A stretch of 63,253 nt of DNA, counting the filler, from Octopus bimaculoides (lineage: Eukaryota): assembly GCF_001194135.2 (NCBI RefSeq). It is 4 parts of 4 records of this genome, joined end to end, with 100 filler letters (N's around TTAATTAATTAA, not from the genome) between each part and the next. Parts side by side here need not be neighbours in the genome. Positions count along the whole stretch, not along the records: positions 1 to 24,216 come from NC_069005.1; 3 more parts are not named here. One strand, written 5' to 3'. This document shows, in pieces, positions 545-58,545 of the stretch. Position 1 is the stretch's first letter. Every line of letters starts with the position of its first letter. A model generated the notes under the pieces. It saw nothing but the letters and a program-made list of their open reading frames with translations. It was not told the DNA's origin and ran no database searches. The position numbers and the translations under genes were made by a program.

Positions 545-1670
545 TATCTAGGTTATATGGGCTGAGAGGAAGCTCTCCTTGAAAGGTCGAGCGGAGGTGG
601 CGAATGNNNNNNNNNNTGTGACGACGTTCTCGGGGAAACTCTAGGCGTCGAGGATAATCAGCTAAGTAGTCTGTTCAGGAGAACCTTTGGGGCCCATGGA
701 TAATTTCCAAAGGTCCCTCGCCTGGCAGTGCTACCGAGGTGCGCTACCTGTTCGAGATAAACTCTACCGACATGGAAGTGCCGTCAACCGGGCCTGCCCG
801 AGGTGCGCTCAGGACAACGAAACCGTTCTGCACGCACTCGTCCAGTGCCCGAGCATTGCTGACCTGTGGGTCTATATCGAACAGCTACTGTCACGTGTAG
901 GACGGATCCGGCTATCAGCTGAGTCCATCGTGAGAATTGACCCGCCAACCTCCTTTAAGCAGGAGGGCAAGGCAATTTTCCTATGCCTAGTGGCTGTAGC
1001 GAAAGAGGTGATATGGTNNNNNNNNNNNNNNNNNNNNNNNNNNNNNNNNNNNNNNNNNNNNNNNNNNNNNNNNNNNNNNNNNNNNNNNNNNNNNNNNNNN
1101 NNNNNNNNNNNNNNNNNNNNNNNNNNNNNNNNNNNNNNNNNNNNNNNNNNNNNNNNNNNNNNNNNNNNNNNNNNNNNNNNNNNNNNNNNNNNNNNNNNNN
1201 NNNNNNNNNNNNNNNNNNNNNNNNNNNNNNNNNNNNNNNNNNNNNNNNNNNNNNNNNNNNNNNNNNNNNNNNNNNNNNNNNNNNNNNNNNNNNNNNNNNN
1301 NNNNNNNNNNNNNNNNNNNNNNNNNNNNNNNNNNNNNNNNNNNNNNNNNNNNAATGTAAAAGGAGAAAGGGCTCTATACCCCTTTCTTATTTTTTTCTGA
1401 CCAGGCTCCCGTGGTTTTATGGGTTTCTCCACGTGTAACCTTTCCTTTTTCGAAGCGCCTCCCCCTTTAGGAGTTCCACTTATTTATCTATTTATTTATC
1501 TATTTATTTATTATATCTTTCTCCGTTTTCTTCCGTTTTAGACGAACTTTCCTACCTTTTCGGACAAAACCTTTTGTAACCTTCGTCCTGTCTTTGTCCT
1601 TATATGTTTTTAATTGATATTAGCCCTTGTGGCCAATAAAACGAATTAATTATTATTATTATTATTATTA
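545..1670 (+). mobile_element. Tx1/L1-superfamily LINE 3-prime end: ORF2 C-terminal zinc-binding (zf-RVT-like) region, 3-prime UTR, AATAAA and (TTA)n tail; interrupted by N gaps
   Basis: 687-1017 reads SLAWQCYRGALPVRDKLYRHG...CPRCAQDNETVLHALVQCP...LW, matching the L.W....ALP...L / CPRC....ET..H....C motif of L1/Tx1 ORF2. AATAAA near 1635 is followed by an ATT repeat. Confidence 0.8.
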
Positions 1671-2721: not shown

Positions 2722-2850
2722 GGTAACGATGGTGATGGTGGTGATGATGATGTTGATCGTTGTGTTAGAGATGATGATGATGATAATAGTGGTAACAATG
2801 GTGGTGGTTGTCATTGTGGTAGCGGTGGTGATTGTCGTCATAACGAAGGT
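2657..2850. repeat. (TA)n followed by (GAT/GGT)n microsatellites
   Basis: Directly visible. Confidence 0.95.
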
Positions 2851-2953
2851 ATCCAGCTTCCTTGCTATAACACACTATCAATCCTAACTGAAAATTACTG
2901 CAATGTTCATTAATTAATTTATTTATTTATTTATTATTTATTTCAACTTTCAG

Positions 2954-3133
2954 GGTCTCATTTCAATTCCCTACAACTACTTCTGACGAAGAGGGCCGAC
3001 GTTGCTGCAATTGATACCCGATTCCTCGATGACTTTTTCCACCAACATCCTCACTACAAGAGGGAGCTCAAAGTGATGGCTACCCTTGGTCCCATGCCTG
3101 TTAGCCCTTTAGTATTTAGGAAAACGTTACCTT
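2954..3133 (+). CDS. phnD: Internal exon (phase 1-1, 180 nt) of a PhnD-like phosphonate/phosphite-binding periplasmic-binding-protein-fold gene
   Basis: Acceptor tttcaactttcag and donor CTT|gtaagt flank one open frame: (G)SHFNSLQLLLTKRADVAAIDTRFLDDFFHQHPHYKRELKVMATLGPMPVSPLVFRKTLP. It fits the PhnD/SsuA/transferrin-family pattern GSH..S...V..G.AD.AAID...L......P.....L.V...LGP.P..P.V....LP. The assignment is by recalled motif and the symbol is family-level only. Confidence 0.82.
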
Positions 3134-3496
3134 GTAAGTGATTTTTTTTTTTTTTTTTTTTTCACGTTCAAATTATTTTGTAAATCTTACAAAATGATTG
3201 TTTTGTATAAAGGAAGAAGACAGGACCTGTCTTATGAAGAATGTATACATAACATAGGTGGATTAGAGATATTTGACAGGATGAGTGCTATTCAGCAGAA
3301 CAAGAGCTATCTGACAGGATGATAGCTATTTGACTGGATGATATCAATAGGGTTTCATAAGTTTTATTCATTCAGAAGTTACCTGTGAATCTGGGAAAAA
3401 TTTGTCTGAATTTCTTGGAAGCTGCTATTGTTTAACCCCAGGACAAATCTGATCAAGCAGTCTTAAGCTCAAAAAAACATTCCAGCTATGACCATA

Positions 3497-3659
3497 GGTG
3501 CAGGAGTGGCTGTGTGGTAAGTACCTTGCTTACCAACCACATGGTTCCGGGTTTAGTCCCACTGTGTGGCACTTTGGGCAAGTGTCTTCTACTATAGCCT
3601 CGGGCCGACCAAAGCCTTGTGAGTGGATTTGGTAGACAGAAACTGAAAAAAGCCCGTCG

Positions 3660-3708
<49 letters not shown>

Positions 3709-3920
3709 TTGTGTGTCTGTGTTTGTCCCCCCCTACACATTGCTTGACAACTGATGCTGGTGTGTTTACGTCCCCGTAACTTAGCGGTTTGGCAAAAGAG
3801 ACTGATAGAATAAGTACTAGGCTTACAAAGAATAAGTCCTGGAGTTGATTTGCTCAACTAAAGGAGGTGCTCCAGCATGACCACAGTCAAATGACTGAAA
3901 CAAGTAAAAGAGAGTAAAGA
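3497..3920 (+). mobile_element. tRNA-headed SINE, family A (CORE-like segment ttgggcaagtgtcttctactatagcctc), full length with internal TA/TG microsatellite
   Basis: Near-identical copies at 60205-60600 (+), 38805-39095 (+) and 33535-34039 (-). Confidence 0.9.
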
Positions 3921-4582: not shown

Positions 4583-5447
4583 NNNNNNNNNNNNNNNNNN
4601 NNNNNNNNNNNNNNNNNNNNNNNNNNNNNNNNNNNNNNNNNNNNNNNNNNNNNNNNNNNNNNNNNNNNNNNNNNNNNNNNNNNNNNNNNNNNNNNNNNNN
4701 NNNNNNNNNNNNNNNNNNNNNNNNNNNNNNNNNNNNNNNNNNNNNNNNNNNNNNNNNNNNNNNNNNNNNNNNNNNNNNNNNNNNNNNNNNNNNNNNNNNN
4801 NNNNNNNNNNNNNNNNNNNNNNNNNNNNNNNNNNNNNNNNNNNNNNNNNNNNNNNNNNNNNNNNNNNNNNNNNNNNNNNNNNNNNNNNNNNNNNNNNNNN
4901 NNNNNNNNNNNNNNNNNNNNNNNNNNNNNNNNNNNNNNNNNNNNNNNNNNNNNNNNNNNNNNNNNNNNNNNNNNNNNNNNNNNNNNNNNNNNNNNNNNNN
5001 NNNNNNNNNNNNNNNNNNNNNNNNNNNNNNNNNNNNNNNNNNNNNNNNNNNNNNNNNNNNNNNNNNNNNNNNNNNNNNNNNNNNNNNNNNNNNNNNNNNN
5101 NNNNNNNNNNNNNNNNNNNNNNNNNNNNNNNNNNNNNNNNNNNNNNNNNNNNNNNNNNNNNNNNNNNNNNNNNNNNNNNNNNNNNNNNNNNNNNNNNNNN
5201 NNNNNNNNNNNNNNNNNNNNNNNNNNNNNNNNNNNNNNNNNNNNNNNNNNNNNNNNNNNNNNNNNNNNNNNNNNNNNNNNNNNNNNNNNNNNNNNNNNNN
5301 NNNNNNNNNNNNNNNNNNNNNNNNNNNNNNNNNNNNNNNNNNNNNNNNNNNNNNNNNNNNNNNNNNNNNNNNNNNNNNNNNNNNNNNNNNNNNNNNNNNN
5401 NNNNNNNNNNNNNNNNNNNNNNNNNNNNNNNNNNNNNNNNNNNNNNT

Positions 5448-5818: not shown

Positions 5819-6162
5819 NNNNNNNNNNNNNNNNNNNNNNNNNNNNNNNNNNNNNNNNNNNNNNNNNNNNNNNNNNNNNNNNNNNNNNNNNNNNNNNNNN
5901 NNNNNNNNNNNNNNNNNNNNNNNNNNNNNNNNNNNNNNNNNNNNNNNNNNNNNNNNNNNNNNNNNNNNNNNNNNNNNNNNNNNNNNNNNNNNNNNNNNNN
6001 NNNNNNNNNNNNNNNNNNNNNNNNNNNNNNNNNNNNNNNNNNNNNNNNNNNNNNNNNNNNNNNNNNNNNNNNNNNNNNNNNNNNNNNNNNNNNNNNNNNN
6101 NNNNNNNNNNNNNNNNNNNNNNNNNNNNNNNNNNNNNNNNNNNNNNNNNNNNNNNNNNNNNN

Positions 6163-6689: not shown

Positions 6690-7085
6690 CTTGGACATTT
6701 TGATCAAAAGAGTCACCAGCAGCAGATATGGCATCATCATCACTGCAATACTGATCCCAGCCAAGTGTTTTTTTTCATGTTGGGGAACAGATGATAGTCA
6801 GCTGGGGCCAAATCAGGAGAATAGGGATGCTGATCAACCAGTTCAGAGCCAGTCATGCACAGCAGCCCTTAAAACCATGGACCTTCTGGAGCATCATCCT
6901 GATGAAACAAGACCAGTTTTCCTGGGTGTTTGGTCTTGATAAACTTTCATAACTACTTCAGCAAGTTGGCATAGTACTCTTCATTGATGGTGTGGCCCTG
7001 TTGAAGATACTCAATAAACACAAAGCCTTTTGCATCCCCCAAAACTGAAGCCATCACCTTTTCTGCAGATGAAATGACCTTAGCT
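6690..7085 (-). mobile_element. Degenerate mariner (DD34D) transposase fragment
   Basis: The minus strand reads SAEKVMASVLGDAKGFVFIEYLQQGHTINEEYYANLL..KTKHPGKL..FHQDDAP..HPYSPDLAPADYHLFPNMKK with stops and deletions. Confidence 0.85.
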
Positions 7086-7109
7086 TTTTGGGAGCAGGTG
7101 AGGAGGGGT

Positions 7110-7432
7110 GGCACATAAAAAGCACCCTTTGAACTTTAGGCCTCATGGTGGTAGTGACAAGTGACTGAGACCTTTGGTGATATACTGTGCTTGAGAACAC
7201 CTGTCAAGTGAAGTGAGATCGTAGGTGAAGCTGATGCTGGTGTTACGTAACTTGTGCCAGTGGAATGTAAAAAGCACCCCCTACACTCTTGGAGTGGTTG
7301 GCATTAGGAAGGGCATCCAGCTGTAGAGACCATACCAAATCAGATTGGAACCTGGTGCAGCTCCCCAGCTTACTAGTTTTCAATCAAACTGTCCAACCCA
7401 TGCCAGCATGGAAAGCGGATGTTAAATGATGA
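7110..7432 (+). mobile_element. Element ending in the RTE 3-prime tail (truncated RTE or RTE-mobilised SINE)
   Basis: aaaagcaccc..ggagtggttggcattaggaagggcatccagctgta..ccaacccatgccagcatggaaagcggatgttaaatgatgatg; same tail as 58319-58545. Confidence 0.75.
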
Positions 7433-7454
7433 TGTGTATGTGTGTGTCTGCACA

Positions 7455-7870
7455 CACATATGCATAAATACATACATGGAATACTAGTGGAACATTCCCA
7501 TCAAAACATCTGGCAAGTGTAAACATTACAGGCCTGATATTGTTGATTGGGACAGACAAGGAAAAGTATTTAACCATCACAGTGGTCAGCTGTCCTGTTG
7601 ATGTGAATATCTCTTTGAAAATCAAAGAGAAAGATAACTATGGACACCTGCTTCGAGACCTCCAGCTTCTGCATCCGGATTACAACTTTACATTTATATC
7701 AATAATAATTGGGTGCTCTTGGTTTCGTAAGTAAATACCTTACTGTCAGTCTGGATAAGCTTGGATTATCAGAAGGAGAATTCAACCAACTGGTTTGCAC
7801 ATTACAAATTCAGTCTGAAAAAGCAGAACAGCAAAACTATGCAAGGCTTTTCTCAGGTTTAAAAATCTGA
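7455..7870 (+). mobile_element. R4/Dong-type non-LTR retrotransposon, restriction-like endonuclease (RLE) fragment, degenerate
   Basis: Across frameshifts reads PIKTSGKCKHYRPDIV..VSCPVDVNISLKIKEKDNYGHLLRDLQLLHPDYNFTFISIIIG, matching the RPD...D/E.EK..Y RLE motif. Confidence 0.75.
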
Positions 7871-7979
7871 CATTGTTTTCATTGTCTAAATTCCAACGAT
7901 GGAGCTTTGTATCTTTGTTAGAAACCAGCTCATTCTTTGAAAGAGGAATTTAAATAATTAAATTCAGAAAAGAACACAC

Positions 7980-8011
<32 letters not shown>

Positions 8012-8669
8012 AGTAGAATTTGTGGGTGCAAGTGGATCTGTGATTGCTACTGTTATGTTTATTAGAGCTCCACGTAGATTTTTCACAATTCAGTCTGATT
8101 TCTGTAGAGTTGTTGGGTAACTTTTACACCAAGTAGTTTTACCAGTTATGAACTACAGAGCAAATGTAGGTGAAACAAGGATAAGAACAGTTTTGTGTAA
8201 TACTTCCTACACAAATTCCACCATTGTATGTATGTATGTATGTATGTATGTATGTATGTATCCGTCTGTCTACCTACCTACCTATCTATCTATCTATCTA
8301 TCTATCTACCTATCTATCTATCTAACTACCTACCTTCCTTCCCTCCCTCTCTCCTTCCCTCCCTCCCTCCCTCCCTCCTTCCTTTCTTGCACCTTCCTAT
8401 TTAGAGTCCTACAAAACTTGAAGTAGCACAACACTGAATCAAATTATTCTAAATAATACATGTAACTCCCACTAAATGTGTTGAATGTCCTTTTCTTTTT
8501 CATTCACTCATGCGTATACATCATTGTCAGACGAGACTCATCAGCTACAGATGCCGGAACTACCAGATCATGTGGTTTCACCCTGGTTAAGACTCCTCAG
8601 TGGCAGACATTCATTAGCAATGAAACAGCTGAATCCCACAGTTCAATACTGCTTCTTTTGCTATTAAAT

Positions 8670-9146
8670 GTGAAGGCGCATGGCTCAGTGGTTAGTGTGT
8701 TGGGCTCACAATCATGAGGTAATGAGCTCGATTCCCAGACCCGGCTATGTGTTGTGTTTTTGAGCAAGACATTTTATTTCATGTTGCTGCTGGTCACTGT
8801 TCACTCAGCTGTAGGAATAAGTTGCAACATCACTGGTTGTTGTTGGCACTCCGTCGCTTACGACGTTGAGGGTTCCAGTCGATCCAATCAACAGAACAGC
8901 CTGCTCGTGAAATTAACGTGTAAGTGGCTGAGCACTCCACAGACACGTGTACCCTTAACGTAGTTCTCGGGGAGATTCAGCGTGACACAGTGTGACAAGG
9001 CTGGCCCTTTTGAAATACAGGTACAACAGAAACAGGAAGTAAGAGTGAGAGAAAGTTGTGGTGGAAGAGTACAGCAAGGTTCACCACAATCCCCTGCCGG
9101 AGCCTCGTGGAGCTTTAGGTGTTTTCGCTCAATAAACACTCACAAN
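8670..9146. mobile_element. SINE family C head (+, about 8670-8830) tail-to-tail with a related SINE on the minus strand (about 8840-9146, running into the gap)
   Basis: The head is tRNA-like (ggcgcatggctcagtggttag..tcgattcc). 8850-9030 is the reverse complement of the body of the copy at 43255-43572. Confidence 0.75.
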
Positions 9147-10466
9147 NNNNNNNNNNNNNNNNNNNNNNNNNNNNNNNNNNNNNNNNNNNNNNNNNNNNNN
9201 NNNNNNNNNNNNNNNNNNNNNNNNNNNNNNNNNNNNNNNNNNNNNNNNNNNNNNNNNNNNNNNNNNNNNNNNNNNNNNNNNNNNNNNNNNNNNNNNNNNN
9301 NNNNNNNNNNNNNNNNNNNNNNNNNNNNNNNNNNNNNNNNNNNNNNNNNNNNNNNNNNNNNNNNNNNNNNNNNNNNNNNNNNNNNNNNNNNNNNNNNNNN
9401 NNNNNNNNNNNNNNNNNNNNNNNNNNNNNNNNNNNNNNNNNNNNNNNNNNNNNNNNNNNNNNNNNNNNNNNNNNNNNNNNNNNNNNNNNNNNNNNNNNNN
9501 NNNNNNNNNNNNNNNNNNNNNNNNNNNNNNNNNNNNNNNNNNNNNNNNNNNNNNNNNNNNNNNNNNNNNNNNNNNNNNNNNNNNNNNNNNNNNNNNNNNN
9601 NNNNNNNNNNNNNNNNNNNNNNNNNNNNNNNNNNNNNNNNNNNNNNNNNNNNNNNNNNNNNNNNNNNNNNNNNNNNNNNNNNNNNNNNNNNNNNNNNNNN
9701 NNNNNNNNNNNNNNNNNNNNNNNNNNNNNNNNNNNNNNNNNNNNNNNNNNNNNNNNNNNNNNNNNNNNNNNNNNNNNNNNNNNNNNNNNNNNNNNNNNNN
9801 NNNNNNNNNNNNNNNNNNNNNNNNNNNNNNNNNNNNNNNNNNNNNNNNNNNNNNNNNNNNNNNNNNNNNNNNNNNNNNNNNNNNNNNNNNNNNNNNNNNN
9901 NNNNNNNNNNNNNNNNNNNNNNNNNNNNNNNNNNNNNNNNNNNNNNNNNNNNNNNNNNNNNNNNNNNNNNNNNNNNNNNNNNNNNNNNNNNNNNNNNNNN
10001 NNNNNNNNNNNNNNNNNNNNNNNNNNNNNNNNNNNNNNNNNNNNNNNNNNNNNNNNNNNNNNNNNNNNNNNNNNNNNNNNNNNNNNNNNNNNNNNNNNNN
10101 NNNNNNNNTTTTTTTTTTTTTTTTTTTTTTTTCCTTAATTTTTTTTTCCCTTGATATGCAATTTGTATATTGATCTGCTACAACAATAGCAATGAGCGTC
10201 AGCTTTCAAATATCTCAAAATGAAGTCAAGTCACAATTGTCATAAACATCAAAAAAAGATAAACCCCATTGTGTGTGTGTGTGTGTGTGTTATCTTTTAT
10301 TTTTGTATTCAACTTATAAATTCAATAATATAAAAATTACGTAATTGCATTATCCGAAATAAATATATATTCTTAAGGAAAAAACATTTTCTTGTTCATT
10401 GTCTTTGAATTGTATTTGCGATGCTATCTAATTTAAGAAACTTGGTACCACATGCATTAGTATATG

Positions 10467-10733
10467 CAGTGGTGGACTGGGTCTGAAAATATTGGTTGCT
10501 AGGAGACTAAGGGGGTCCACCCGCAACTACAATGCTATAATTTAATATTATTTTTACTGTTAAAAATATTTGTTTCAATTATCTACAAATACAGCCAGGC
10601 TGAAATAATTAATGCATTCTTCCAGGAGTGAATAAAAAATTCTCAAACTAACATGGGCCCCATATATGGATTCTAATGACACAGGGGCCCACTTGCCATC
10701 GGGCAAGCTGGCAACCTGGCCAATCCACCACTG
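10467..10733. mobile_element. hAT-type MITE with perfect 8-bp target-site duplication
   Basis: TIRs cagtggtggactgg / ccaatccaccactg; AGTATATG at 10459-10466 and 10734-10741. Confidence 0.9.
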
Positions 10734-10797
10734 AGTATATGCATACATGAGGTAAAGAAAGCATTGGTAGAGTTATCATGGTGTTGTTATTGTTTAC

Positions 10798-10980
10798 CAT
10801 TGAGTCAACACTGATCGGTCTGTCATCCCAATATGACTATTCTGTCCCCATTTTATCCTTTTGCAAGCATCCTCCAGTACTATCTCTCGAAAAACATATA
10901 TCTGTTCTTTTACACCGGTGAGATGGTGTTTTGCTTCAGGAACAACCAGACAGCCCACCGCCACTGCCACTCGGTACAAT
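10798..10980 (-). CDS. Internal exon (phase 2-2, 183 nt) of an unidentified protein-coding gene
   Basis: Acceptor cctaacacttag, donor TG|gtaaac. Only one frame is open: LYRVAVAVGCLVVPEAKHHLTGVKEQIYVFREIVLEDACKRIKWGQNSHIGMTDRSVLTQ. The sequence is non-repetitive. Family not recognised. Confidence 0.55.
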
Positions 10981-11235
10981 CTAAGTGTTAGGTGACCAAT
11001 TTGAGCAGTGACAAAAGTAAAGCTTGATAGAGCTCTTTACTCCATAGTGTTGGTGCCTTGGGAAAAAAACACACCCAGTACATTCTTTAAAGTAGATGGT
11101 GTTAGGGTGTCCAGCTGTAAAAACTAAACCAAAGCAGAAATTGGAGCTCAATGGATCATATCAAATTCTCTCACACATGTCAGCATGGAAGATGGATATT
11201 AAATAATAATATATTTTCACTTTTTTAGCTCATGC

Positions 11236-23599: not shown

Positions 23600-24100
23600 N
23601 AGCCGTTGCGATGACATGTCCACCGATGCAACTGGTTTTTTTTTTTTTTATCTATCTCTTCCCACCCGTAAAGTTTTGCTTCATCTATGATTACAGACTT
23701 TATTTTGAAGCGATGGTTAACATAAGAAGAATAAAAAAATAAAAAAACGCAGGCCTCATGATGTGGTTGTTGTTTCATTTGTATGTGTGTAATATCGCTT
23801 GATATTATACTTGGTGGTACAGCGTGGGTTTTTGGCTGCTCTGCAGGGTAGCTAAATTGGCCGCCTCTTCCCTCTTCCTCAAATGTAACATACCTTCCTC
23901 TACAGCAAACGTAACGTACCTTCAAGCAGTGACGTAGCTAGTATGTATGTGCCGCTCGGGACAGCCCTGGGCCAATATAGTCTATACATACTTACACAGC
24001 AGACTCACAAGTGGCGTCGCTCCTCGCTACGCGACTACCTCCGGCTACATGTACATAAAGTGACTGCCCTTACAATCCACGCACCCTACACTTAGCTATT
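23600..24100 (-). promoter_or_regulatory. Possible promoter/first-exon region
   Basis: Unique CpG-rich sequence with CCAAT on both strands, tgacgt motifs and strong minus-strand donors (gaag|gtacgt, gaag|gtatgt, |gtaagt). Inference only. Confidence 0.25.
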
Positions 24101-25521: not shown

Positions 25522-27039
25522 NNNNNNNNNNNNNNNNNNNNNNNNNNNNNNNNNNNNNNNNNNNNNNNNNNNNNNNNNNNNNNNNNNNNNNNNNNNNNNN
25601 NNNNNNNNNNNNNNNNNNNNNNNNNNNNNNNNNNNNNNNNNNNNNNNNNNNNNNNNNNNNNNNNNNNNNNNNNNNNNNNNNNNNNNNNNNNNNNNNNNNN
25701 NNNNNNNNNNNNNNNNNNNNNNNNNNNNNNNNNNNNNNNNNNNNNNNNNNNNNNNNNNNNNNNNNNNNNNNNNNNNNNNNNNNNNNNNNNNNNNNNNNNN
25801 NNNNNNNNNNNNNNNNNNNNNNNNNNNNNNNNNNNNNNNNNNNNNNNNNNNNNNNNNNNNNNNNNNNNNNNNNNNNNNNNNNNNNNNNNNNNNNNNNNNN
25901 NNNNNNNNNNNNNNNNNNNNNNNNNNNNNNNNNNNNNNNNNNNNNNNNNNNNATATATACGTAACAAATGATCGAGACGGAAAGTGGAACATACGAGAAA
26001 CTTTATTGCTCCCAACGATCGTTTCCTTAACAAGAATGGATACTTTTTCGTTTTTTTTTTCTTTTTTCAAACCCTTAATATCACGTGTATGTTTAATTTC
26101 TTCACAGCATCTTTAATATTTTCCATTGCTTGCAGAAAGTAATTCTTCCCAGAATTTTATCTGTTATCAACCGATTTAAAACTCTTTGAATGTTACGATG
26201 TGTCTTGGAAACGGAAACAATTCCCTGACCTATGGGCAACAAATAGGCTGTAGTAATGACCACTTCAGTAGATACTCATGTTTGGATTAAATCGATATTA
26301 GAAAGATAACCACACTAAATTCGGAGACGCCCTCCGTTGATTTTTGCGAGCTTTTTTTTTTCTTTTTTGATATATACGGTTTTATTTCAAACTAGCTTTG
26401 AGATTACTGGAGCGTAAGGGACCACAAAAAAGAAGGGGCCAACAAAATGGAAAGATATCAAGCTTAAAGGATTGAATATCATAAGCCAGAGGAAAACACG
26501 ACGATGGTTATGAGTTCCAGAATGCAACAGTTCGAGGATAGAAGCCATTAGCATTAAAAGATTTAAGACTAACAGGAAGCTCAACAGAAAAACGATTCAC
26601 TTAGAAAGAGATGTGGGTGAAACGTTTAAAAGTCTTGAAAAAGAAAAGAAAGCTACTCAAAGAGAAAGTTTATCAGAGTAATGGCCATAGAAATACTTAT
26701 AGGAAAAAACACAATGAAGATATATTTGGGTGATGAGCCAAAGACTCCGACCGAGTAGAAAGGAGGGTAGGCCACCATGTTCACAACTCGAATCTAAATT
26801 CGATCAACCGAGTTAAGACACTCATAAAAGGCACCAACCCAAAGATTATAAATAAATTTCAAGTCCCCGGGGATATTTGCACCAAACAGCATCGTAAGAC
26901 GATCTTCTCTGCTTTGGTGCCTTTGTTTCTTTCTTTGAGATAAAAGTCTTAAAGAGTAACCACTTCCCTTATAGGCCGTGCATAATAAGTCTGTATTAGA
27001 TAAACTATATTTAGTCGTTGTTTACCTCCTGCTATGTAA

Positions 27040-27116: not shown

Positions 27117-30100
27117 TTCAATTGTGCTGGGCCACTGTCAGTGGTGGATAGTAACGGGTAGAAGGGTAGAACGCAAGGAGACCTTCAAGATCTGTGCATT
27201 CAACGAGAGAAATGCACACACACAAACACACACACACAAATATATATACATAATATTTATCTATTATATATGATATATATATCTATTAGATATATGTATA
27301 TACATACATACATATATACATACATACATACATATAGACACATGCACCGGTTGTTTGGTAACGGAATTAATTATAATTACTATATAATTAACTCTAGAAT
27401 AGTGTTGAAGATGATGGTGGTGGTGGTGGTGGTGGTGGTGGTGGTGGTGACGATGACGATGACGATGATGATGACGATGATGAGGATGATAATGTATGTG
27501 CAGTGACGATGACGATTTTGACCAGGTGTGAAGGAATACTCGGACAGTGATTTGTTTTGGTGAAAAGCAGTCCCATCCACCCCACACCCAGCCCATAGCC
27601 TCAATAAATAAAATTCCGTTAATGCCATGGATTCTGTCTTAACGGCCAAATATTCTTTAAAGTCACTCCAGTCCTACTTGAACTAAAAATAAGTAAATAA
27701 AATGGTCTAAGGGGAAATAACTCAAAGAGACCAAACGACACGAAGACAAAGATATTTTTTAAGAGGCGATGTACTAACTGATGTGTATAAAAATAAATAT
27801 ATTAATTAATTGGCTAAAGAAAGAAAGCTAAAGCCTAACGGACATCTACTACCGGATGTATATCACTGAAACGCCTAAAACACAGCGAAACTACGTTTTC
27901 TGTCAGATTCGCACGGCCATCTGTCCACGATAGAAATACGAGTCCCAGGCTAAAGCCAATCTCAATACAGTGCTGGTCAACAGAAACTTCGTCTAAAGCT
28001 GCAGTCGTAAGAAAAAGAACGTGCCGTGGTCAATTATAGCAGAAATAAATATATCTGTCTACTATTACAGTGAAACTAGATATTCTGAAAGTAATCTCAG
28101 GAGTAACTCGCCGAGGATTCCATTACAAATACACCGAATGAACTGTGTCGTAACATTCCTAGTCGTCATGAATCTCAGAGCTAGCTTCATTAGTTTCGCA
28201 TTCAACGTTGAAAGGAAAAAATCGTACAACTGTCTGTGGGAGGATGTGTCTGGTGTGTTAGTTTGCAGATGACCCCCACTTAATATTAAGTGCGTTTATT
28301 ATGATAAATCTGTTTATGAAGTCTTTACTTATTTTTTGCTTAATATTACTTTTCAATTAAAAGGCGCGAACTGGTAGAATCGTTAGCACACCAAGCAAAA
28401 TGCTTATCAGCATTTCGTCTGCTCTGTGTTCGAATTCCACCGAGGTTGATTGTGACTCTCATCCCTTTCGGGGTCGATAAAATAAGTACCTTGCCTCTCC
28501 CCCGAAATTACTTGCCTTGTGTCAAAAATATGAAACCAAAATTATACTTCAATTATTTATCTACGATGTAAGACAGGGGATTACTACCTTAAGTTCAATG
28601 TGGCTGAATAGTTAAGGTCTTCACTTCGCAACCATAAAGCTTCGTGTTCGATCCCATTTCACGTAACATCTTGGAGGAAATGTTATTTTATACATTCCCA
28701 AGACAATCCGTATATTGTGAACGAAACCGGGTGGACAGTACCAGTAATTCATAAGGTAAAACCCTTGACATGCCACACTGTCATGTCGATCCTGCCTGAG
28801 GATTATGTTAAAGACACTTATGTCTGTGGAATACTCAGCCACTTAAATGTTAATTCAGGTAAATCATATGATCCTCATCACCGAACGACGGAGTAAAATT
28901 GGTAGAGCAGTATTTAGTTGTTGACTTTCCGTTTTAAGTTCAAATCTTGCAAAAGTTTTCTTTTCCTCTTTCGAGATCGATGAAAAAAATAAGAACTAGT
29001 AGTCGAGTAATGAGATCGATATAATCGATTGTTCCATACGAAAAATGTAGTATCACCTTTTAATGGATACTTCAGATCATTGACAAGTTAACCAGTTCAG
29101 TTCATTTATCTGATTTTGTCCCCAGCCATATGGTTCCTAGTCCAGTTCCAGTATGTAGCACCTTGACCAAATGTTTTCTACTCTAGCCTCGCGCCAACCA
29201 AAGCCTTATGAGTGCATTTAATAAACAGATGCGGAGAAGTTGAAGCAGAGAGATGGGATGAAAAAAAATCAGAAACGCTGATGTAGATCTTAAGTGTTAT
29301 CTTTTTCAATAAAATCTGGTCATCCAGCCGGTTGTGATAACAACTTTGTGTTGGTTGTACCTAATTTTAAATGTGTTTCTGGTTCAAGTGATTCAATTCC
29401 AGCGGTTGCTTTACTGACAAAGACACCTTGCTCGATGCAGACACTTGCCATTGATAGGACAGGATATGGTGCTGTTGCTGTACCATTGTAGGGAAGAGCT
29501 TACCTTGTTCTTTCATGTCTTGTTTTTATTCTTTCTTTCTATTTTAGAACTAACTTTCAGATCATTTTTCTGCAATATTTTATAGTATTTGTAGTGTGAG
29601 AAAATGCTTCCGTATAAATAATCGTTTCTGAGGTTGATACAAGGACAGCAATTTTGAGGAGAGGCTTTAAACAATATCATCGACTCCGGTACTTGACTGA
29701 TACTTTATTTCATCAAACCCGGAGATATGAAAGACAAAATTGACCTCGGTGAGATTTGATCCCAGAGTCTAAAGTGGCCCAAAAAATACATTTTCCGACG
29801 CTCTAACGATTGTGCGTTTCACCGCTTTGAATTTTTTTTTTTTTTTTTTTCAATTTGAGCACAAAACTAAAATATTTTTAGGGGAAAGCTGACCCATACC
29901 AGCGGCCCCAGTATTTGACAGTTTCTTTATTTTGCTGATTCCGTCCGTGGGGAAATGTAAAGCAAAATTGACGTCAGAGAGATTTGAATCCAGAAAGTAA
30001 AAAGTCACTGAAATTATACCGGAAAGGGTGGGGAATATTACCTTTCTTTTCCTGTTTTTTGCTGAGACTGTCACTTGTTATTTTGTATTCAAAGAAAATG

Positions 30101-32099: not shown

Positions 32100-32423
32100 C
32101 TGTGTGTGTGTGTGTGTAACTAGTTGGACTTGCAGTATATGTCTATATTAGTATGTCGATTAAAGCAAATCCACCGTCCGTTTGCCTGAACCAGTGTAGA
32201 ACTCGCCAGAAGAACAAACCAAGTAGAACTCAGTATATACGGAGTGGGATGTATTTTTCTACGCCAATCACCTGAAGTGAAACAGCCTGCACTGACTGAT
32301 GCAACACAACTAGATGCACAATATCCCAGCCCTAAGGAACAGCCTCAAGATGGGTTGAAACGATCGATCGTCGTGCTGAATAAAGATTCGCACTAAATCC
32401 ATCTTCCGTTTCCTTTATGAGTT

Positions 32424-32464
<41 letters not shown>

Positions 32465-32470
<6 letters not shown>

Positions 32471-32650
32471 TGTTGCATGACTCGTTTCTCTGGGGTTTTT
32501 TTGGGGGGTTTTTTTTTCGTTGTTCGAAAAAAGTTCGTTTTCTATGTTTTTGTTTTTATGCTCTCGTTTCTCGTTGTGTCTACATTTTTTTTTGATGTCC
32601 TGTACCCATATATGCATATATACATATATTTATATATCATTTATATTATA
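32465..32650. repeat. Interspersed repeat, inverted homolog of 59600-59770; class uncertain (possibly Penelope-related)
   Basis: Shared string tatatgggtacaggacat..gagaaacg..cataaaaacaaaaacatagaaaac..gagaaacgag..atgcaacata on opposite strands. Confidence 0.6.
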
Positions 32651-44713: not shown

Positions 44714-46470
44714 TATGCCGCTAGACGGGACGGGTGAAGGACCGTAGAGTTCTCTGCCCACCCTCGCTTAATTACGGGGTACATGCTTTATCTGTTTTAA
44801 AGACAAACATCTTGGGTGACTTTTTACAACAGCAGCATTTTATTATTTTACACACACACACACGCACACACACACAGGGATAAAGTTAACTGTGCTAATT
44901 ATGATTATCAAAATGAAATATAATTATTTCCTTGAAAAAATTAATTTAGAAAGGAATAAAGCCAAAAATCAAGTCGTTTATTTTCGCAAGTGCTACAGCC
45001 GAGATATTAAACAGACCCCCAAGGGGTATGTTTAAGTAACTAATCTTTGACCCCTTCTTCTGACCTGATTAAGGCTGGTAGTTTACTGAAGCTCCCTAAG
45101 GAAAACAATGGTACCCTGTTTATTGTCAAAACTATTGCACCACAAGTGTTAATCTCTGTTTTACATGGAGGTTACCATCACCAAGTGTATGTCAGCTGAT
45201 TTCTGACGTGAATGCAAGACCACACTGGTTGGGGTAGAAAGGAGACGGGTATTGGTTGATTATATCGCCTCCAGTTCGTGACTGGTACTTGAATTTTATC
45301 TATCCGAGAAATATGAAGAGTGAAGTCGACCTGAGCGGGATTTGAACTCAGAACGTAAAGAGATGTAATTAAATCTCGTATGATACTTTGCCTGCAGCTC
45401 TAGCAATTCTGACCCATTGACCGTTTGATCCCGTGACCTCCTAACACATGTTAGTCTCAGTATGTGGCTTTTTGTCAGAAGTTGTCAACGTCTTTGTTAC
45501 TTTCAAGTCCATACTAAGACGTAAATAATTACTATCATAATACATGTCACAATATTTGTCATAGTAGTTAATACATGTCACAGTTCCTTACATCACTCAC
45601 TGTATCTCACATCGTAGTGAAGGAGCCGTCGCCCCGTGAGAAATGGCAACCAAATATCACTCCAGTCTAAGAAAGAGTGCATTAGAGTGCGTAGTCCTAA
45701 TACTAAAAACAAATAACTTTAAGAGAAACCTGAAGAAGGCATAATACAGCCTTTTCTAAATATTTTTGGTACCTGTTTAAGTGCTTTTAGAATACGTTGG
45801 CCAATTCTGGGTTTACATTACTTTATACACAAGATGAGTTTAGTTGCAAAATGCGATAAACTGCTCTGCTTAAATGAAAAACAAACAATTTTGTTCCAAG
45901 ACAAGAATAAACTGAGGAATTCGAATTTGTCCATCTTTGCTGGCAGTCAGGGAAATTCCTGCTCCTAAATTTTCGTATTATCAAACAAATAATGTATAAT
46001 TACAAGCAACATGAAACGAAAATAACATTATTTCTTAATTTCGAAGATCCCAGACGTTACAAATTTCCTAACTTTTTTTATGAGTCGCCTCCTCTGAAAT
46101 CTTTTACAATTTTTACGAATGCATTTATTTCAATTTAAATATTACTTTGTATAAACCATATTTACAACGCTATTTTTTTTTATCATTTTGACTATGTACG
46201 TACAAAGTGTTATTTTCACCTGGCAAACAATATATAGCCATTATATTTTATCCAATCGATCTTTCCGTTATTTGCCATTAGCCAATCAATACTTACCACA
46301 CAAGTCAACGCTTGTAAACTTTTTAAATGTTAAATTCCACGTTTCGTTGTTTTTTTGTTGTTTTTTATAACCGTCTGAAAATTCAGCTTCCAATACATTA
46401 TCTTACTCTACTTGTATCGAATACTCATTCACTCTCACTCTATCTATCTCTTTCTTTGCCTTTCTCTCTA

Positions 46471-46502
<32 letters not shown>

Positions 46503-46521
46503 CCTCTCTCTCTCTTTCTCA

Positions 46522-46587
<66 letters not shown>

Positions 46588-46860
46588 TTCTATCTATTTC
46601 TGTCTACCTATCTCTATCTCTTTCTCTTCTTTTTGCTTATACTTACGTGTATGCATTTATTTATTTATTTATTTATTTATGTCTGTGTATATGCGTTGGT
46701 GTTTGTGTGAGTGTAAGTAAACATGAGAGCATTCGTGTGCATTCGTGCGTGTGTGTACATGTGTGAGCGTGCGTGTGTGTGTAAGTGAGACCACATCACT
46801 CCTGCACCAGGTGAACCTAGCGCCATTAATTAACACACCCTTCTTTTTTACTAATTACAG

Positions 46861-51859: not shown

Positions 51860-52345
51860 AGCTTACTATCTGCAGGCTATGGTACCATGCTATCTGTTTA
51901 TTCAAGTATCTAACACTTTCCTGATGATTCTGGCTGTGCCAAAGAAGCAAACCTTTTGTAACAGTTTTACTGGGCACTCTATTTCAATTTTCTTTATATT
52001 CCTCTTGATGCCTTCTGATACTGTTCCCAGGGATCCAACAATAATTTGTACTATTTTCACCTCCTTCACTTGCCATAAATGAGTCTTCTCACATTTAAGA
52101 GAATTGTATATGTCTGCTTTTTGCTTTCTTGACTATTTGTAGGTCAAAGGGGCACACAACATCAATTATAGAGCATATATGGTTCACTTTGTCCACCACC
52201 ACCACTAAGTCCAGCTTGTTGTGCTCAAGCACCTAGTCTGTTTGGATTGGGAAATCCCTCAGGATTTTGCAGGTCTTTGTCTCCACCACTCTCTGTGGTC
52301 TGTGCTCACACCATGTCTTGCTTCTCTCTAAACCCCACTTTTCAC
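51860..52345 (-). mobile_element. R4/Dong-type LINE RLE domain and ORF end, degenerate
   Basis: The minus strand reads W.EHRPQRVVETKTCKILRDFPIQTD.VLEHNK.D..VVDK..IIDVVCPFD and EVKIVQIIVGSLGTVS...LLQKVCFFGTARIIRKVLDT-stop. Confidence 0.8.
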
Positions 52346-52421
52346 AAAGTTTCCAGTATAGAATTTTCACTCCCCCTTTTTATTATTATTAATATTATTA
52401 TATTCTTCAACATATACGTTA

Positions 52422-52791
52422 TTATTACCTCCACCTTAGTGAAGGTGTAGGTATTGTTTTCAGTCGTGTTTGTTTGTTTGTCCATGTACAAGATATCTCC
52501 AGAACCGAAGGATGGATTCAGATGAAACTTTCAGGCATGTTTGGCCTCATAACTGGCATGAACTGATTAGATTTTGGAGTTGATCTGGTACTGGACAAGG
52601 ATTCTGGATTATTTTTCTGTTTTTTTTTACTTAATTTTTGAGAGTGGTTGGGTTCATTTTTAGTATTCTCATTTGTGAGAGCAGTCAAGTTTATTTCAGA
52701 TATTCTCATTTTAAAAATCATCTCTGCCTAATCGTTGAGAGGATGTTGATGTTGCCTTGGTGAACGTTTGTGCTCACTGAGTGCTCTTGTT
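52422..52791 (+). mobile_element. Helentron-associated (HINE/DINE-1-like) non-autonomous element, near full length
   Basis: 5-prime ttacctccacc, (TTTG)n tract, body homologous to 2108-2388, 3-prime ccttggtgaacg, hairpin gctcactgagt, ending tcttgtt in a TTA context. Confidence 0.55.
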
Positions 52792-53397
52792 ATTATTATC
52801 ATCATCATCATCATTATTATTATTATTATTAAGTACTGGGGTTGGTTTAATTGACTAGCCCTCTCTCCCAAAATTGCTGGCCTTATGGGTGTGTTAGAAA
52901 CATTATTATCAAAGTAACATGAGAACAATGGATTGGAAGAATTGATAGCGCAGTGTACATAATGCCTTGCAGTATTTAGTCATGCTCCTTAATGTTCTGA
53001 ATTCAATTACTACCATCTTTCCAAGATTGATAAAAGAAGTATCACTTATGTACTGAGATCAATTTAATTGACTGTTTCCTACCTGCAAAGTTTCTGTGTT
53101 TATCACTCTATTGAAAAAAAAATATTATGTTAGAAACTATTATTATTGTTATTACTTACCTTTTTGTATAAAGCAAACTGCCTTTACATGGTATTATTAT
53201 GAAAAATTATGATCAAATAGGATAGCAGATTATCAGAATTAGTGTGTACTCTACCTAGTAGTATTTAATTACATCTCTTTACATTCTGAATATAATAAAC
53301 CTTGCTGGAATGGGCTTTGTTTTCCCTCCTTTTGAAGTTTAACTAAATTCATCTTTATGGCCTTGTGTTAATTTAAGAAACCCTCTTTAGGACTGAA

Positions 53398-57429: not shown

Positions 57430-58545
57430 ATATGGTTACAAACCCCTTCAGGTAGATGGCCCTGCTCAGTATGTAGAAAAGGAGTAGGTAGTAACTCTAT
57501 AAGATGTACCCGGTGCAAGCTATGGACACATAAGAGGTGCAGCAACATCAAAGGCAGGTTAACTAGCAAGTTAGTTTTTGTTTGTGGCAGATGTTCAGGT
57601 GCAATAAAGACTGCAAACAAACAGGAAACAACTTCTATCTCATTCCAGGGTGAAAAACTAGAGGTAGTCGATAGCTTCCGCTATCTGGGCGACCAAGTTA
57701 GTAGTGGGGGTGGGTGCGCTGAAAGTGTAGCTGCTAGAATAAGAATAGCCTGGGCAAAGTTTAGNNNNNNNNNNNNNNNNNNNNNNNNNNNNNNNNNNNN
57801 NNNNNNNNNNNNNNNNNNNNNNNNNNNNNNNNNNNNNNNNNNNNNNNNNNNNNNNNNNNNNNNNNNNNNNNNNNNNNNNNNNNNNNNNNNNNNNNNNNNN
57901 NNNNNNNNNNNNNNNNNNNNNNNNNNNNNNNNNNNNNNNNNNNNNNNNNNNNNNNNNNNNNNNNNNNNNNNNNNNNNNNNNNNNNNNNNNNNNNNNNNNN
58001 NNNNNNNNNNNNNNNNNNNNNNNNNNNNNNNNNNNNNNNNNNNNNNNNNNNNNNNNNNNNNNNNNNNNNNNNNNNNNNNNNNNNNNNNNNNNNNNNNNNN
58101 NNNNNNNNNNNNNNNNNNNNNNNNNNNNNNNNNNNNNNNNNNNNNNNNNNNNNNNNNNNNNNNNNNNNNNNNNNNNNNNNNNNNNNNNNNNNNNNNNNNN
58201 NNNNNNNNNNNNNNNNNNNNNNNNNNNNNNNNNNNNNNNNNNNNNNNNNNNNNNNNNNNNNNNNNNNNNNNNNNNNNNNNNNNNNNNNNNNNNNNNNNNN
58301 NNNNNNNNNNNNNNNNNNGGTGGCACATAAAAGACACCATTTCGAGCGTGGCCGTTTTCGTGCGGGTGACACGTAAAAGCACCCACTACACTCTCTGAGT
58401 GGTTGGCGTTAGGAAGGGCATCCAGCTGTAGAAACTCTGCCAAATCAGACTGGAGCCTGGTGTTGCCATCCGGTTTCACCAGTCCTCAGTCAAATCGTCC
58501 AACCCATGCTAGCATGGAAAGCGGACGTTAAACGATGATGATGAT
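57430..58545 (+). mobile_element. Second RTE-type LINE copy (same family, 5-prime truncated, gapped)
   Basis: GRWPCSVCRKGVGSNSIRCTRCKLWTHKRC..CGRC, then LEVVDSFRYLGDQVSSGGGCAESVAARIRIAWAKF. The same 3-prime tail ends ..cggacgttaaacgatgatg. Confidence 0.93.

Follow-up and report, generated by a model that had tools for sequence, protein, structure and literature searches.

An octopus exon from an ancient animal gene for a leaderless PhnD/ArrX-type protein, a probable cytosolic oxyanion binder

We know of no free-standing binding protein of the bacterial importer type that functions in animals, which use the binding-protein fold only as receptor-internal domains or as transferrins. How, then, should one read positions 2954-3133 of a stretch of Octopus bimaculoides DNA (63,253 nucleotides with filler, assembly GCF_001194135.2, called here the window; positions 1 to 24,216 come from NC_069005.1), in which a first-pass annotation had recognized a spliced exon for part of a PhnD-like protein? 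We find that the segment is a real exon, at exactly the coordinates first given, of LOC106874892, an intron-bearing animal gene of great age whose family encodes leaderless proteins. We consider it likely that the product is a cytosolic oxyanion binder of the PhnD/PtxB/ArrX type, acting without a transporter, and that the deposited O. bimaculoides models are truncated by an assembly gap.

The exon is delimited by the following features:

2915-2953, + strand: acceptor of intron 4, a long pyrimidine-rich tract (tttatttatttattatttatttcaactttcAG) and AG, with the AG at 2952-2953 and the boundary as in O. sinensis
2954-3133, + strand: penultimate coding exon of LOC106874892, 180 nt, called from its splice sites, open frame and orthologue exons
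3134-3141, + strand: donor of intron 5, GTAAGT, with the GT at 3134-3135

With a slash marking each boundary, the acceptor side reads ...tttcaactttcAG/GGTCTCATTTC... (longer view ...tttatttcaactttcAG/GGTCTCATTTCAATTCC...) and the donor side ...ACGTTACCTT/GTAAGTga (longer view ...GGAAAACGTTACCTT/GTAAGTgatt). Of the six frames, just one runs through the segment without a stop, and it gives the peptide (G)SHFNSLQLLLTKRADVAAIDTRFLDDFFHQHPHYKRELKVMATLGPMPVSPLVFRKTLP, which carries the GSH..S, AD.AAID and LGP.P..P.V..LP motifs that had been named at the outset. The exon consists of 2 + 59x3 + 1 nt, so that both entry and exit are in phase 1. It is the fifth of six coding exons and the fourth of the five that are conserved, and its boundaries match those of the orthologous O. 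sinensis exon at 46427-46606 of that species' locus (L001), as given by exact splice mapping of the RefSeq protein. The absence of the exon from the open reading frame (ORF) track, also noted in the first-pass annotation, is explained by its first in-frame start codon, a GTG at 3073, which leaves only a 22-aa piece in a bacterial-style ORF list.

The exon peptide alone matches the Pfam family PF12974 (Phosphonate-bd) at 36.2 bits (gathering cut-off 27 bits; E 5.5e-9; model positions 143-202 of 242) and the NCBIfam model TIGR01098 at 23 bits. Three elements of the binding-protein fold fall within the exon: a conserved Gly-Ser-His helix cap, and the strands that bear AAID and LGPxP. A word-indexed protein search with the 60-aa peptide returned no candidates, and a phmmer search of the PDB with the exon alone gave spurious matches to ankyrin and designed-repeat proteins, with PhnD at E ~0.1. 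An exhaustive HMMER search, run against 1.84 billion representatives, brought up 88 relatives, the best of which was the 244-aa XP_052832645.1, 100% identical to the exon peptide over residues 183-242. This entry is the RefSeq 'uncharacterized protein LOC106874892 isoform X2 [Octopus bimaculoides]'; isoform X1 is XP_014778289.1, equivalent to UniProt A0A0L8GT18, 'Solute-binding protein family 3/N-terminal domain-containing protein'. Orthologues are present in O. sinensis (LOC115224559, protein P0089, 306 aa, 82% identical), O. vulgaris (CAI9740805/6) and Argonauta hians (GAB1608163). By exact mapping, the O. sinensis exons lie on L001 at 10001-10072 (an alternative first exon), 26660-26855, 29771-29915, 32391-32536, 46427-46606 and 54655-54833, the fifth of these being the counterpart of our exon and likewise 180 nt long.

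Comparison of the two Octopus species also speaks to whether the exon is in use. It is 88.9% identical to its O. sinensis counterpart, whereas identity is ~79-80% over 200 nt upstream and over 60 nt downstream, and the 11 non-synonymous and 9 synonymous differences give a ratio of non-synonymous to synonymous rates (dN/dS) of ~0.33, a rough value from one small exon. The excess of exon over intron identity and the low ratio argue for a functional coding sequence under purifying selection.

To what family does the whole protein belong? Against Pfam, the O. sinensis orthologue P0089 matches PF12974 alone, at 100.4 bits over model positions 6-238 of 242. It falls below the models for PhnD itself, scoring 68.5 against a cut-off of 261 for the equivalog TIGR03431 and 77 against 112 bits for TIGR01098. 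Judged by these profiles, the protein belongs to the PF12974 superfamily and is not a PhnD; the original assignment to the PhnD/SsuA/transferrin-type, type II binding-protein family is thus upheld at the level of the superfamily. Inspection by eye of 27 animal and bacterial members, made as a check for export, found no signal peptide in any of them, the first beta strand beginning within 5-25 residues. The best solved relative by sequence is ArrX, a binding protein that senses arsenate in Chrysiogenes arsenatis (E 1.6e-14); E. coli PhnD (~3-6e-7, two PDB entries) and AioX come after it.

We built an AlphaFold2 model of P0089 from a 118-sequence alignment (mean predicted local distance difference test 88.9, predicted template modelling score 0.83), using the O. 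sinensis protein since the O. bimaculoides sequence is incomplete. The predicted structure is a two-lobed alpha/beta 'Venus flytrap' of the type II binding-protein fold. In a Foldseek comparison with the PDB, the top 43 matches were ArrX, AioX, PtxB, PhnD, HtxB and their relatives, with these five ranking first at E 7e-22 to 1e-14 and template modelling (TM) scores of 0.8-0.85. Far behind came the transferrin N-lobe (TM 0.55-0.59, 11-12% identity, E 2e-10) and Thi5 (TM ~0.55, E 2e-10). Taken with the pocket alignment described below, the model suggests that fold and pocket are nearer to ArrX and AioX than to PhnD proper.

We next consider how widely, and for how long, animals have carried this gene. 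Homologues were gathered by a profile search (the best 120 of 2242 matches) and by cluster look-ups. They include the brachiopod Lingula anatina; the bivalves Crassostrea virginica, where the protein is automatically named 'PhnD2', and Tegillarca; the marine gastropods Littorina, Lottia, Haliotis asinina (automatically named 'PtxB'), H. rufescens and Gigantopelta; the land snails Candidula and Bradybaena; the hemichordate Glandiceps; the cephalochordate Branchiostoma; and, among crustaceans, Artemia and Macrobrachium (prawns, freshwater). The remark in the first-pass annotation that such proteins are catalogued in other invertebrates yet uncharacterized was accurate, as the two automatic names attest.

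When splice sites were mapped exactly in five species of four phyla (O. sinensis, Lingula, C. virginica, Branchiostoma and Glandiceps), the same layout emerged in each: five coding exons of ~187-208, 145-151, 146, 180 and 179-182 nt, separated by introns in phases 1, 2, 1 and 1. The counterpart of the exon at 2954-3133 is exactly 180 nt long, with the same phases, in all five. Because these intron positions are common to protostomes and deuterostomes, an intron-bearing gene was present in their common ancestor, and the gene with its present introns therefore predates the split; vertebrates and many other lineages have lost it. The identification as a spliced animal gene is confirmed, and of the two origins that had been offered for it, ancient retention is supported by intron positions and phases held in common by molluscs, a brachiopod, a hemichordate and a cephalochordate; these exclude a recent transfer.

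Two further features suggest that the animal genes share one line of descent. The C-terminus is Tyr-Tyr (YY) in each of the 23 full-length proteins of the animal clade, and in 34 sequences when fragments and isoforms are included, and no sequence outside that clade has this ending. A neighbour-joining tree groups the animal sequences together at a bootstrap value of 55/100 (cephalopods 86, octopods 85). One animal-clade sequence ends in -FY rather than -YY. In the structure model the terminal pair follows a low-confidence tail (for example, residues 305-306 of P0089).

Among the matches listed, the closest relatives outside animals are leaderless proteins of ~275 aa, 27-38% identical, from uncultured Actinomycetota (many of them Rubrobacteraceae), Chloroflexota, Thermoanaerobaculia, Planctomycetota and Myxococcota, in 272 species-level genomes. 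These bacterial proteins begin straight at the first beta strand (M...LRFVTYLSPxIP), with no signal peptide, and are annotated in metagenome-assembled genomes (MAGs) as 'PhnD/SsuA/transferrin family substrate-binding protein'. No ATP-binding cassette (ABC) transporter lies beside the gene in three metagenome contexts, and neither a kinase nor a regulator gene was found in those contexts or in four animal loci examined. PhnC and PhnE are likewise absent beside the gene in the four animal loci, where the neighbours are unrelated eukaryotic genes or none, in agreement with the earlier suggestion that the animal protein has no permease partner. The order arginyl-tRNA synthetase (ArgRS), homologue, metallophosphoesterase, CpgS_N, GlpX recurs in two of the three metagenome contexts. 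On the Actinomycetota contigs (L002/L003/L004/L005) we observed a conserved row without a transporter, made up of ArgRS, the homologue, the metallophosphoesterase, CpgS_N, the GlpX fructose-bisphosphatase and Rho.

A motif scan of 80 bacterial loci placed an ABC ATPase within 4 kb in eight, all of them from Rubrobacteraceae, and none in the other 72. In these Rubrobacteraceae (539-4816 of L043, from the MAG chromosome OZ243953.1, together with L038, L039, L054, L057, L063, L067 and L078) the order is a LysR regulator, a lipoprotein PhnD (TIGR01098, 203 bits; N-terminus MFRKLFFLLSLSVFAVALAGC), a PhnC-like ATPase, PhnE (TIGR01097, 251 bits) and the leaderless member, which starts 3 nt after PhnE on the same strand. 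The second-best model for the LysR regulator is the 2-aminoethylphosphonate (AEP)-catabolism LysR, at 166 bits, below its cut-off. This row links the leaderless subfamily, in a single lineage, to an importer of the phosphonate/phosphite type. It is unusual for a complete importer to be followed by a further 'binding protein' that stays in the cytoplasm, and the arrangement may be a clue to what the subfamily does.

If the gene is intact in animals at large, why do the O. bimaculoides models end early? All three isoforms terminate in ...RKTLPCK; orthologues run ~60 residues past KTLP (...KTLPSDVKK..., ...LPSDVKKTITKALLEMPQNP...LVPTYY). The last exon base with the GT of the donor, followed by AAG and TGA, reads Cys-Lys-stop, so that the LPCK end is a read-through of the donor, and this C-terminus is artificial, its last two residues being translated from the intron. 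The arrangement of the locus around the exon is as follows:

1-2953, + strand: 3' part of intron 4, by synteny with L001 43548-46183
3142-9145, + strand: intron 5, with N gaps at 4583-5446 and 5819-6162 and transposon remnants, by a collinear blastn chain to L001 46658-53099
9146-10108, no strand: assembly gap of 963 N, the syntenic site of the absent last coding exon as judged from flanking anchors
10109-12000, + strand: 3' flank of the gene, window 10125-11998 corresponding to L001 55520-58109

A blastn comparison of the window with L001 is collinear throughout this region: 94-2665 corresponds to 43.5-45.9 kb, 2742-3194 to 46183-46658, 7684-8837 to 52001-53099 and 10125-10531 to 55520-55934, the chain continuing to 11998 at 58109. 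The O. sinensis last exon (L001 54655-54833) sits between the two anchors that bracket the 963-N gap. Neither a C-terminal exon nor any of exons 1-4 was found in the readable sequence of the piece of the window analysed here by tblastn with the 88 proteins and with the C-terminal 60 residues of three homologues. Pfam scans found no other PF12974 exon in stop-free fragments of at least 25 aa on the + strand of window 1-20484, or in fragments of at least 55 aa on the - strand and on the + strand at ~20,600-24,100. The most economical reading, based on synteny, is that the true last exon lies in the gap at 9146-10108. This hidden exon would be ~179 nt long, start in phase 1 and encode ~60 residues resembling SDVKKTITKALLEMPQNPTWNQKL...PTYY, and the full-length protein should have ~280-300 residues. 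The RefSeq and UniProt models of 219-245 aa (XP_014778289.1/A0A0L8GT18, XP_052832645.1 and XP_052832646.1) are artefactually short at the C-terminus; with the real last exon in the assembly gap, they would read on into the CK-stop.

Exons 1-4 lie to the left of the window edge, as expected from an intron 4 that measures 13.9 kb in O. sinensis; tblastn of XP_052832645.1 (P0001) against the piece matched residues 182-244 only. Also outside the window is the first exon of isoform X1 (P0095 residues 1-24, MPLCCKSCCRKDVAGKDGKKGKKT; O. sinensis L001 10001-10072, MPLCKSCCRQDVAGKECKNGKKKT), an alternative N-terminus in which a cysteine cluster is followed by a polybasic run. Such a combination resembles N-terminal palmitoylation or membrane-anchor motifs, as in GAP-43, and by that analogy one isoform may be tethered to the membrane from the cytosolic side.

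What might the protein bind? The AioX pocket is formed by Tyr88, Cys106, Tyr131, Ser161, Ser163, His192 and Asp210, the last of which hydrogen-bonds phosphate; PhnD has the Ser, Ser, His and Tyr of AioX, but carries Gly65 where AioX has the Cys and Asn175 where AioX has the Asp, and holds the amine of 2-AEP with Glu177 and Asp205 (PMC5908839). In the 118-sequence alignment, with residues numbered as in P0089, the family is 95-100% conserved at Cys93, Tyr127, Ser159, Ser161, His189 and Asp207, which align with AioX C106, Y131, S161, S163, H192 and D210. Cys93 stands in the motif DVAFMC, to be compared with DLAFIC in ArrX and DIAWYG in PhnD. An AioX/ArrX-type constellation thus appears to be common to the bacterial and the non-octopod animal proteins. 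Three codons of the exon fall at pocket positions:

2959-2961, + strand: His codon of GSH (H189), aligned with the ligand-binding His of ArrX/AioX (H192) and 99% conserved in the 118 sequences
3013-3015, + strand: Asp codon of AAID (D207), family-invariant and aligned with AioX D210 and PhnD N175
3103-3105, + strand: Ser codon at position 237, aligned with E. coli PhnD D205, a ligand of the 2-AEP amine

We take H189 as the likely match of E. coli PhnD H157, though phmmer sets H157 one residue earlier. Position 237 is Tyr in most animals, Gln in most bacteria and S/N/D in octopods, and in the alignment it adjoins the site of the Tyr that caps the small pocket of cyanobacterial PhnD1 (PMC10284923). 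Position 209, which aligns with PhnD E177, is Asn in the family and Arg in octopods. By alignment alone, then, the acidic pair E177/D205 of PhnD is absent from the family. Together with the shortfall against the two PhnD models, this weakens the initial description of the product as a PhnD-like phosphonate binder. In the alignment the Ser loop and the His of PhnD have equivalents, the amine-binding acidic pair does not, and ArrX and AioX are nearer.

The octopod proteins depart from the family pattern at C93S, Y127I, S161T, N155S, D156H/R, N209R and Y237N/S/D, and that of Argonauta also at H189Y. Of the AioX-type set the octopus keeps Ser159, His189 and Asp207 (an equivalent of AioX Tyr88 was not mapped with confidence). 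The octopod pocket has been remodelled, or its constraint partly relaxed, and because several pocket residues are replaced, the octopod ligand or affinity is probably different.

We propose the following mechanism. The protein would reside in the cytosol and close around a small oxyanion, tetrahedral or pyramidal in shape and of the class of phosphite, phosphate, phosphonate or arsenate, contacting it through the Ser-x-Ser loop, His, Asp, Tyr and Cys as in ArrX and AioX. The exon described here would supply part of the ligand cleft, namely the helix-capping His of GSH, the invariant Asp of AAID and the LGPxP strand. The role would be that of an intracellular binder or sensor, possibly an enzyme, rather than of an importer subunit. 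Beyond this we offer, as a tentative extension that we think has a modest chance of being right, a broader history: bilaterians would have kept for >0.5 billion years a cytosolic receptor or enzyme for a reduced-phosphorus, phosphonate or arsenic oxyanion, marked by a Cys-Tyr-Ser-Ser-His-Asp pocket and an animal-specific -YY tail and descended from a bacterial PhnD/ArrX-type protein without a leader that was taken up before protostomes and deuterostomes parted. This would make it the first importer-type binding protein known to work free-standing inside animal cells, and octopods would have retuned its pocket for another ligand.

Several observations tell against a cytosolic oxyanion binder without a transporter, or against parts of that proposal. 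Of the six AioX-type residues, three are missing in octopods, and in Argonauta the His has become Tyr, which could mean that binding has been lost in this lineage. The invariant polar residues E69, R71, D88, D130, N155 and D156 would suit an enzyme too. The pocket mapping draws on alignment and the O. sinensis model, not on inspected coordinates, and the absent last exon is placed by synteny rather than seen. The 72 of 80 bacterial loci without a transporter have uninformative neighbourhoods, and the operon link comes from a single lineage. Bootstrap support for a single animal clade is modest, and the homologue collection covers the best 120 of 2242 profile matches.

The nearest competitor, and a serious one, is an enzyme of the cytosol that has adopted the binding-protein fold, in the manner of Thi5/NMT1, MqnA/MqnD and HisG, and acts on a small phosphorus, sulfur or arsenic oxyanion or its ester. 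The lack of a leader and of a transporter or kinase partner would fit such an enzyme, as would the many polar residues invariant in animals and bacteria (C93, H189 and D207 in addition to the six just listed), the Foldseek match to Thi5 (E 2e-10) and a marginal Pfam match of the Lingula protein to NMT1. In ptxABCD and htx operons the gene of the oxidizing enzyme lies downstream of the importer genes, and the Rubrobacteraceae gene occupies the same slot. All of the close structural relatives are non-catalytic binders, however; neither a catalytic motif nor a cofactor-binding domain was identified, and octopods have lost C93 and Y127 while the gene remains open and constrained, so that we regard an enzyme as rather unlikely. 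We are more doubtful still of a true AEP binder, a PhnD kept to carry or sense the AEP of mollusc lipids and glycans. AEP compounds are abundant in molluscs, the protein is a member of PF12974 with a Ser-Thr-Thr/Ser-x-Ser loop and a His equivalent to the phosphonate ligands of PhnD, and the Rubrobacteraceae homologue stands in a row with phnD-phnC-phnE and a LysR gene resembling, below cut-off, that of AEP catabolism. Yet the scores lie under the PhnD equivalog and TIGR01098 cut-offs, the E177/D205 pair is replaced by N/R209 and Y/Q/N/S237, most animals have at 237 a Tyr near the one that caps the small PhnD1 pocket, and the pocket Cys is of the AioX/ArrX type. The family's occurrence in amphioxus, a hemichordate, freshwater prawns and land snails also loosens the tie to mollusc or marine phosphonates that had been drawn at first.

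The remaining alternatives fare worse. If the octopod gene were decaying, a pseudogene or truncated remnant with a genuine LPCK end and a pocket under relaxed constraint, one would understand why all O. bimaculoides models stop there, why no last exon appears in the readable sequence and why octopods deviate at ~10 otherwise 90-100% conserved positions, with H189Y in Argonauta. But no break in the reading frame occurs in O. bimaculoides, O. sinensis, O. vulgaris or Argonauta, the latter three with full YY C-termini; the exon is more conserved than the introns, with dN/dS 0.33 and conserved splice sites, and the synteny anchors put the last exon exactly in the 963-N gap. We consider decay improbable. 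A single-lobe relative of the transferrin ancestor, binding iron and carbonate, was suggested in the first-pass annotation and finds some echo in the NCBI umbrella name 'PhnD/SsuA/transferrin family' and in the Foldseek transferrin N-lobe match at E 2e-10. With a TM score of at most ~0.59 against 0.8-0.85 for ArrX and PtxB, identity of 11-12%, far weaker similarity than to ArrX, AioX, PtxB and PhnD, a Pfam assignment to PF12974 only and no signal peptide, unlike the secreted transferrins, this kinship is very improbable. Bacterial contamination, or recent transfer into octopus or molluscs, might be suspected from a domain that is otherwise prokaryotic and whose closest non-animal relatives among the matches listed are bacterial MAG proteins at ~30% identity. 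We regard it as ruled out for practical purposes by the spliceosomal introns, by octopus transposons and repeats on both sides, by an AT-rich composition like that of the rest of the window, by collinearity with O. sinensis over >12 kb and by intron positions common to four phyla.

How much of this was known? The gene is already catalogued in RefSeq and UniProt, relatives bear the automatic names 'PhnD2' and 'PtxB', and literature searches on animal PhnD-like proteins, the locus names and PF12974 found no paper on the animal family. To this we add the exon structure conserved across phyla, the leaderless subfamily common to animals and particular bacterial phyla, the predicted Cys pocket of the AioX/ArrX type, which octopods have lost, the YY ending peculiar to the animal proteins, and the truncation of the O. 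bimaculoides models, which we attribute to a gap. The exon itself is ordinary; the unexplored family behind it is a rather surprising one for animals, made up of whole PhnD/ArrX-like proteins that have no leader and are conserved in several animal phyla, intron positions included. Should the ligand be a phosphonate, phosphite or arsenic oxyanion, the family would offer a testable route into invertebrate handling of such compounds, with aminoethylphosphonate lipids and arsenic accumulation in seafood species as relevant cases. As a practical matter, users of the O. bimaculoides RefSeq and UniProt entries should be aware that these end in two intron-translated residues.

The window is AT-rich, microsatellite-filled octopus nuclear DNA with ten N gaps. 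The Pfam scans of stop-free fragments described above found no other cellular gene on either strand, only transposon domains, and Rfam gave no match in the piece. Within intron 4, a zf-RVT fragment (the C-terminal zinc-binding part of a reverse transcriptase of the long interspersed nuclear element type, 31.5 bits) lies at ~640-1010 (+), beside the N gap at 1018-1352, and intron 5 holds a mariner-type Transposase_1 fragment (38 bits) at 6956-7135 (-). A Tc1-like DDE_3 remnant occurs 3' of the gene at ~14300-15000 (+), at 27.5 bits, just below cut-off, with a long open stretch DYLSILSDQIHPMVAELFPEGNAIFHDDNAPIH... Short interspersed repeats occupy 145-360, 1650-2040, 3494-3912, 7250-7434, 12865-12990, 14020-14140, 16297-16610, 20690-20875 and 20990-21215; in the O. 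sinensis locus of 65 kb each family recurs several to >15 times, with copies 72-92% identical, and the repeat at 3494-3912 is an O. bimaculoides insertion relative to O. sinensis intron 5. At 18514-19158, ~15 kb farther downstream than the exon, lies a segment that matches L001 10200-10878 at 78% identity; this part of L001 is the start of intron 1 right after the alternative first exon (MPLCKSCC...) in O. sinensis. The counterpart of that exon would fall in the N gap at 17505-18481, and no such copy of the 5' region is present within 10 kb downstream of the O. sinensis gene. The segment points either to mis-ordering of contigs in the scaffold or to a duplicated 5' region.

Finally, we compare the animal proteins with systems that are better understood. 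Transferrin lobes are distant kin in the type II superfamily, and their anion, too, is bound where a helix begins. Transferrins are secreted iron binders with two lobes, and none of these features is seen in the animal proteins, each a single leaderless unit of ~280 aa. The HMP-P synthase Thi5/NMT1 is intracellular, as the animal proteins probably are, and has the binding-protein fold without a transporter, but its structural match is much weaker (TM ~0.55). PtxB, cyanobacterial PhnD1 and PhnD2, and HtxB (PDB 5JVB, 5O2J, 7S6G, 5ME4), whose ligands are phosphite, phosphate, methylphosphonate and hypophosphite, give the highest TM scores, 0.84-0.85 for Trichodesmium PtxB, and resemble the family in a small oxyanion pocket with Ser-Thr-Ser, His and an Asp acceptor. 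They are periplasmic subunits of ABC importers, are 14-19% identical and are not the closest by sequence. E. coli PhnD (PDB 3P7I), the 2-aminoethylphosphonate subunit of PhnCDE, has the same Pfam family and fold, a loop of the Ser-Thr-Ser type and the His that contacts the phosphonate oxygens; it differs in its signal peptide, its phnC and phnE partners and its amine-binding E177/D205, none of which is found in the animal proteins or loci. Where PhnD has G65, the family has Cys and octopods have Ser.

ArrX of Chrysiogenes arsenatis and AioX of Rhizobium sp. NT-26 (PDB 6X6B, 6XL2, 6ESK, 6EU7) are the best relatives by sequence and fold together (E 7e-22, TM 0.8). By alignment, the family consensus has the same pocket Cys, Tyr, Ser-x-Ser, His and Asp, and ArrX and AioX, too, are binding proteins with no transporter to supply. 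Both are exported, periplasmic sensors of arsenate or arsenite that pass their signal to a histidine kinase; their subfamily (AioX/ArrX/ArxX) is coupled genetically to a sensor kinase and response regulator (AioSR/ArrSR). The animal proteins and their nearest bacterial kin are leaderless and without a kinase partner; identity is 18-22%, and octopods replace the Cys, the Tyr and the second Ser. The leaderless bacterial PF12974 proteins, which have neither introns nor a C-terminal YY and are likewise uncharacterized, have nearly all of the conserved pocket and core residues in common with the animal proteins.

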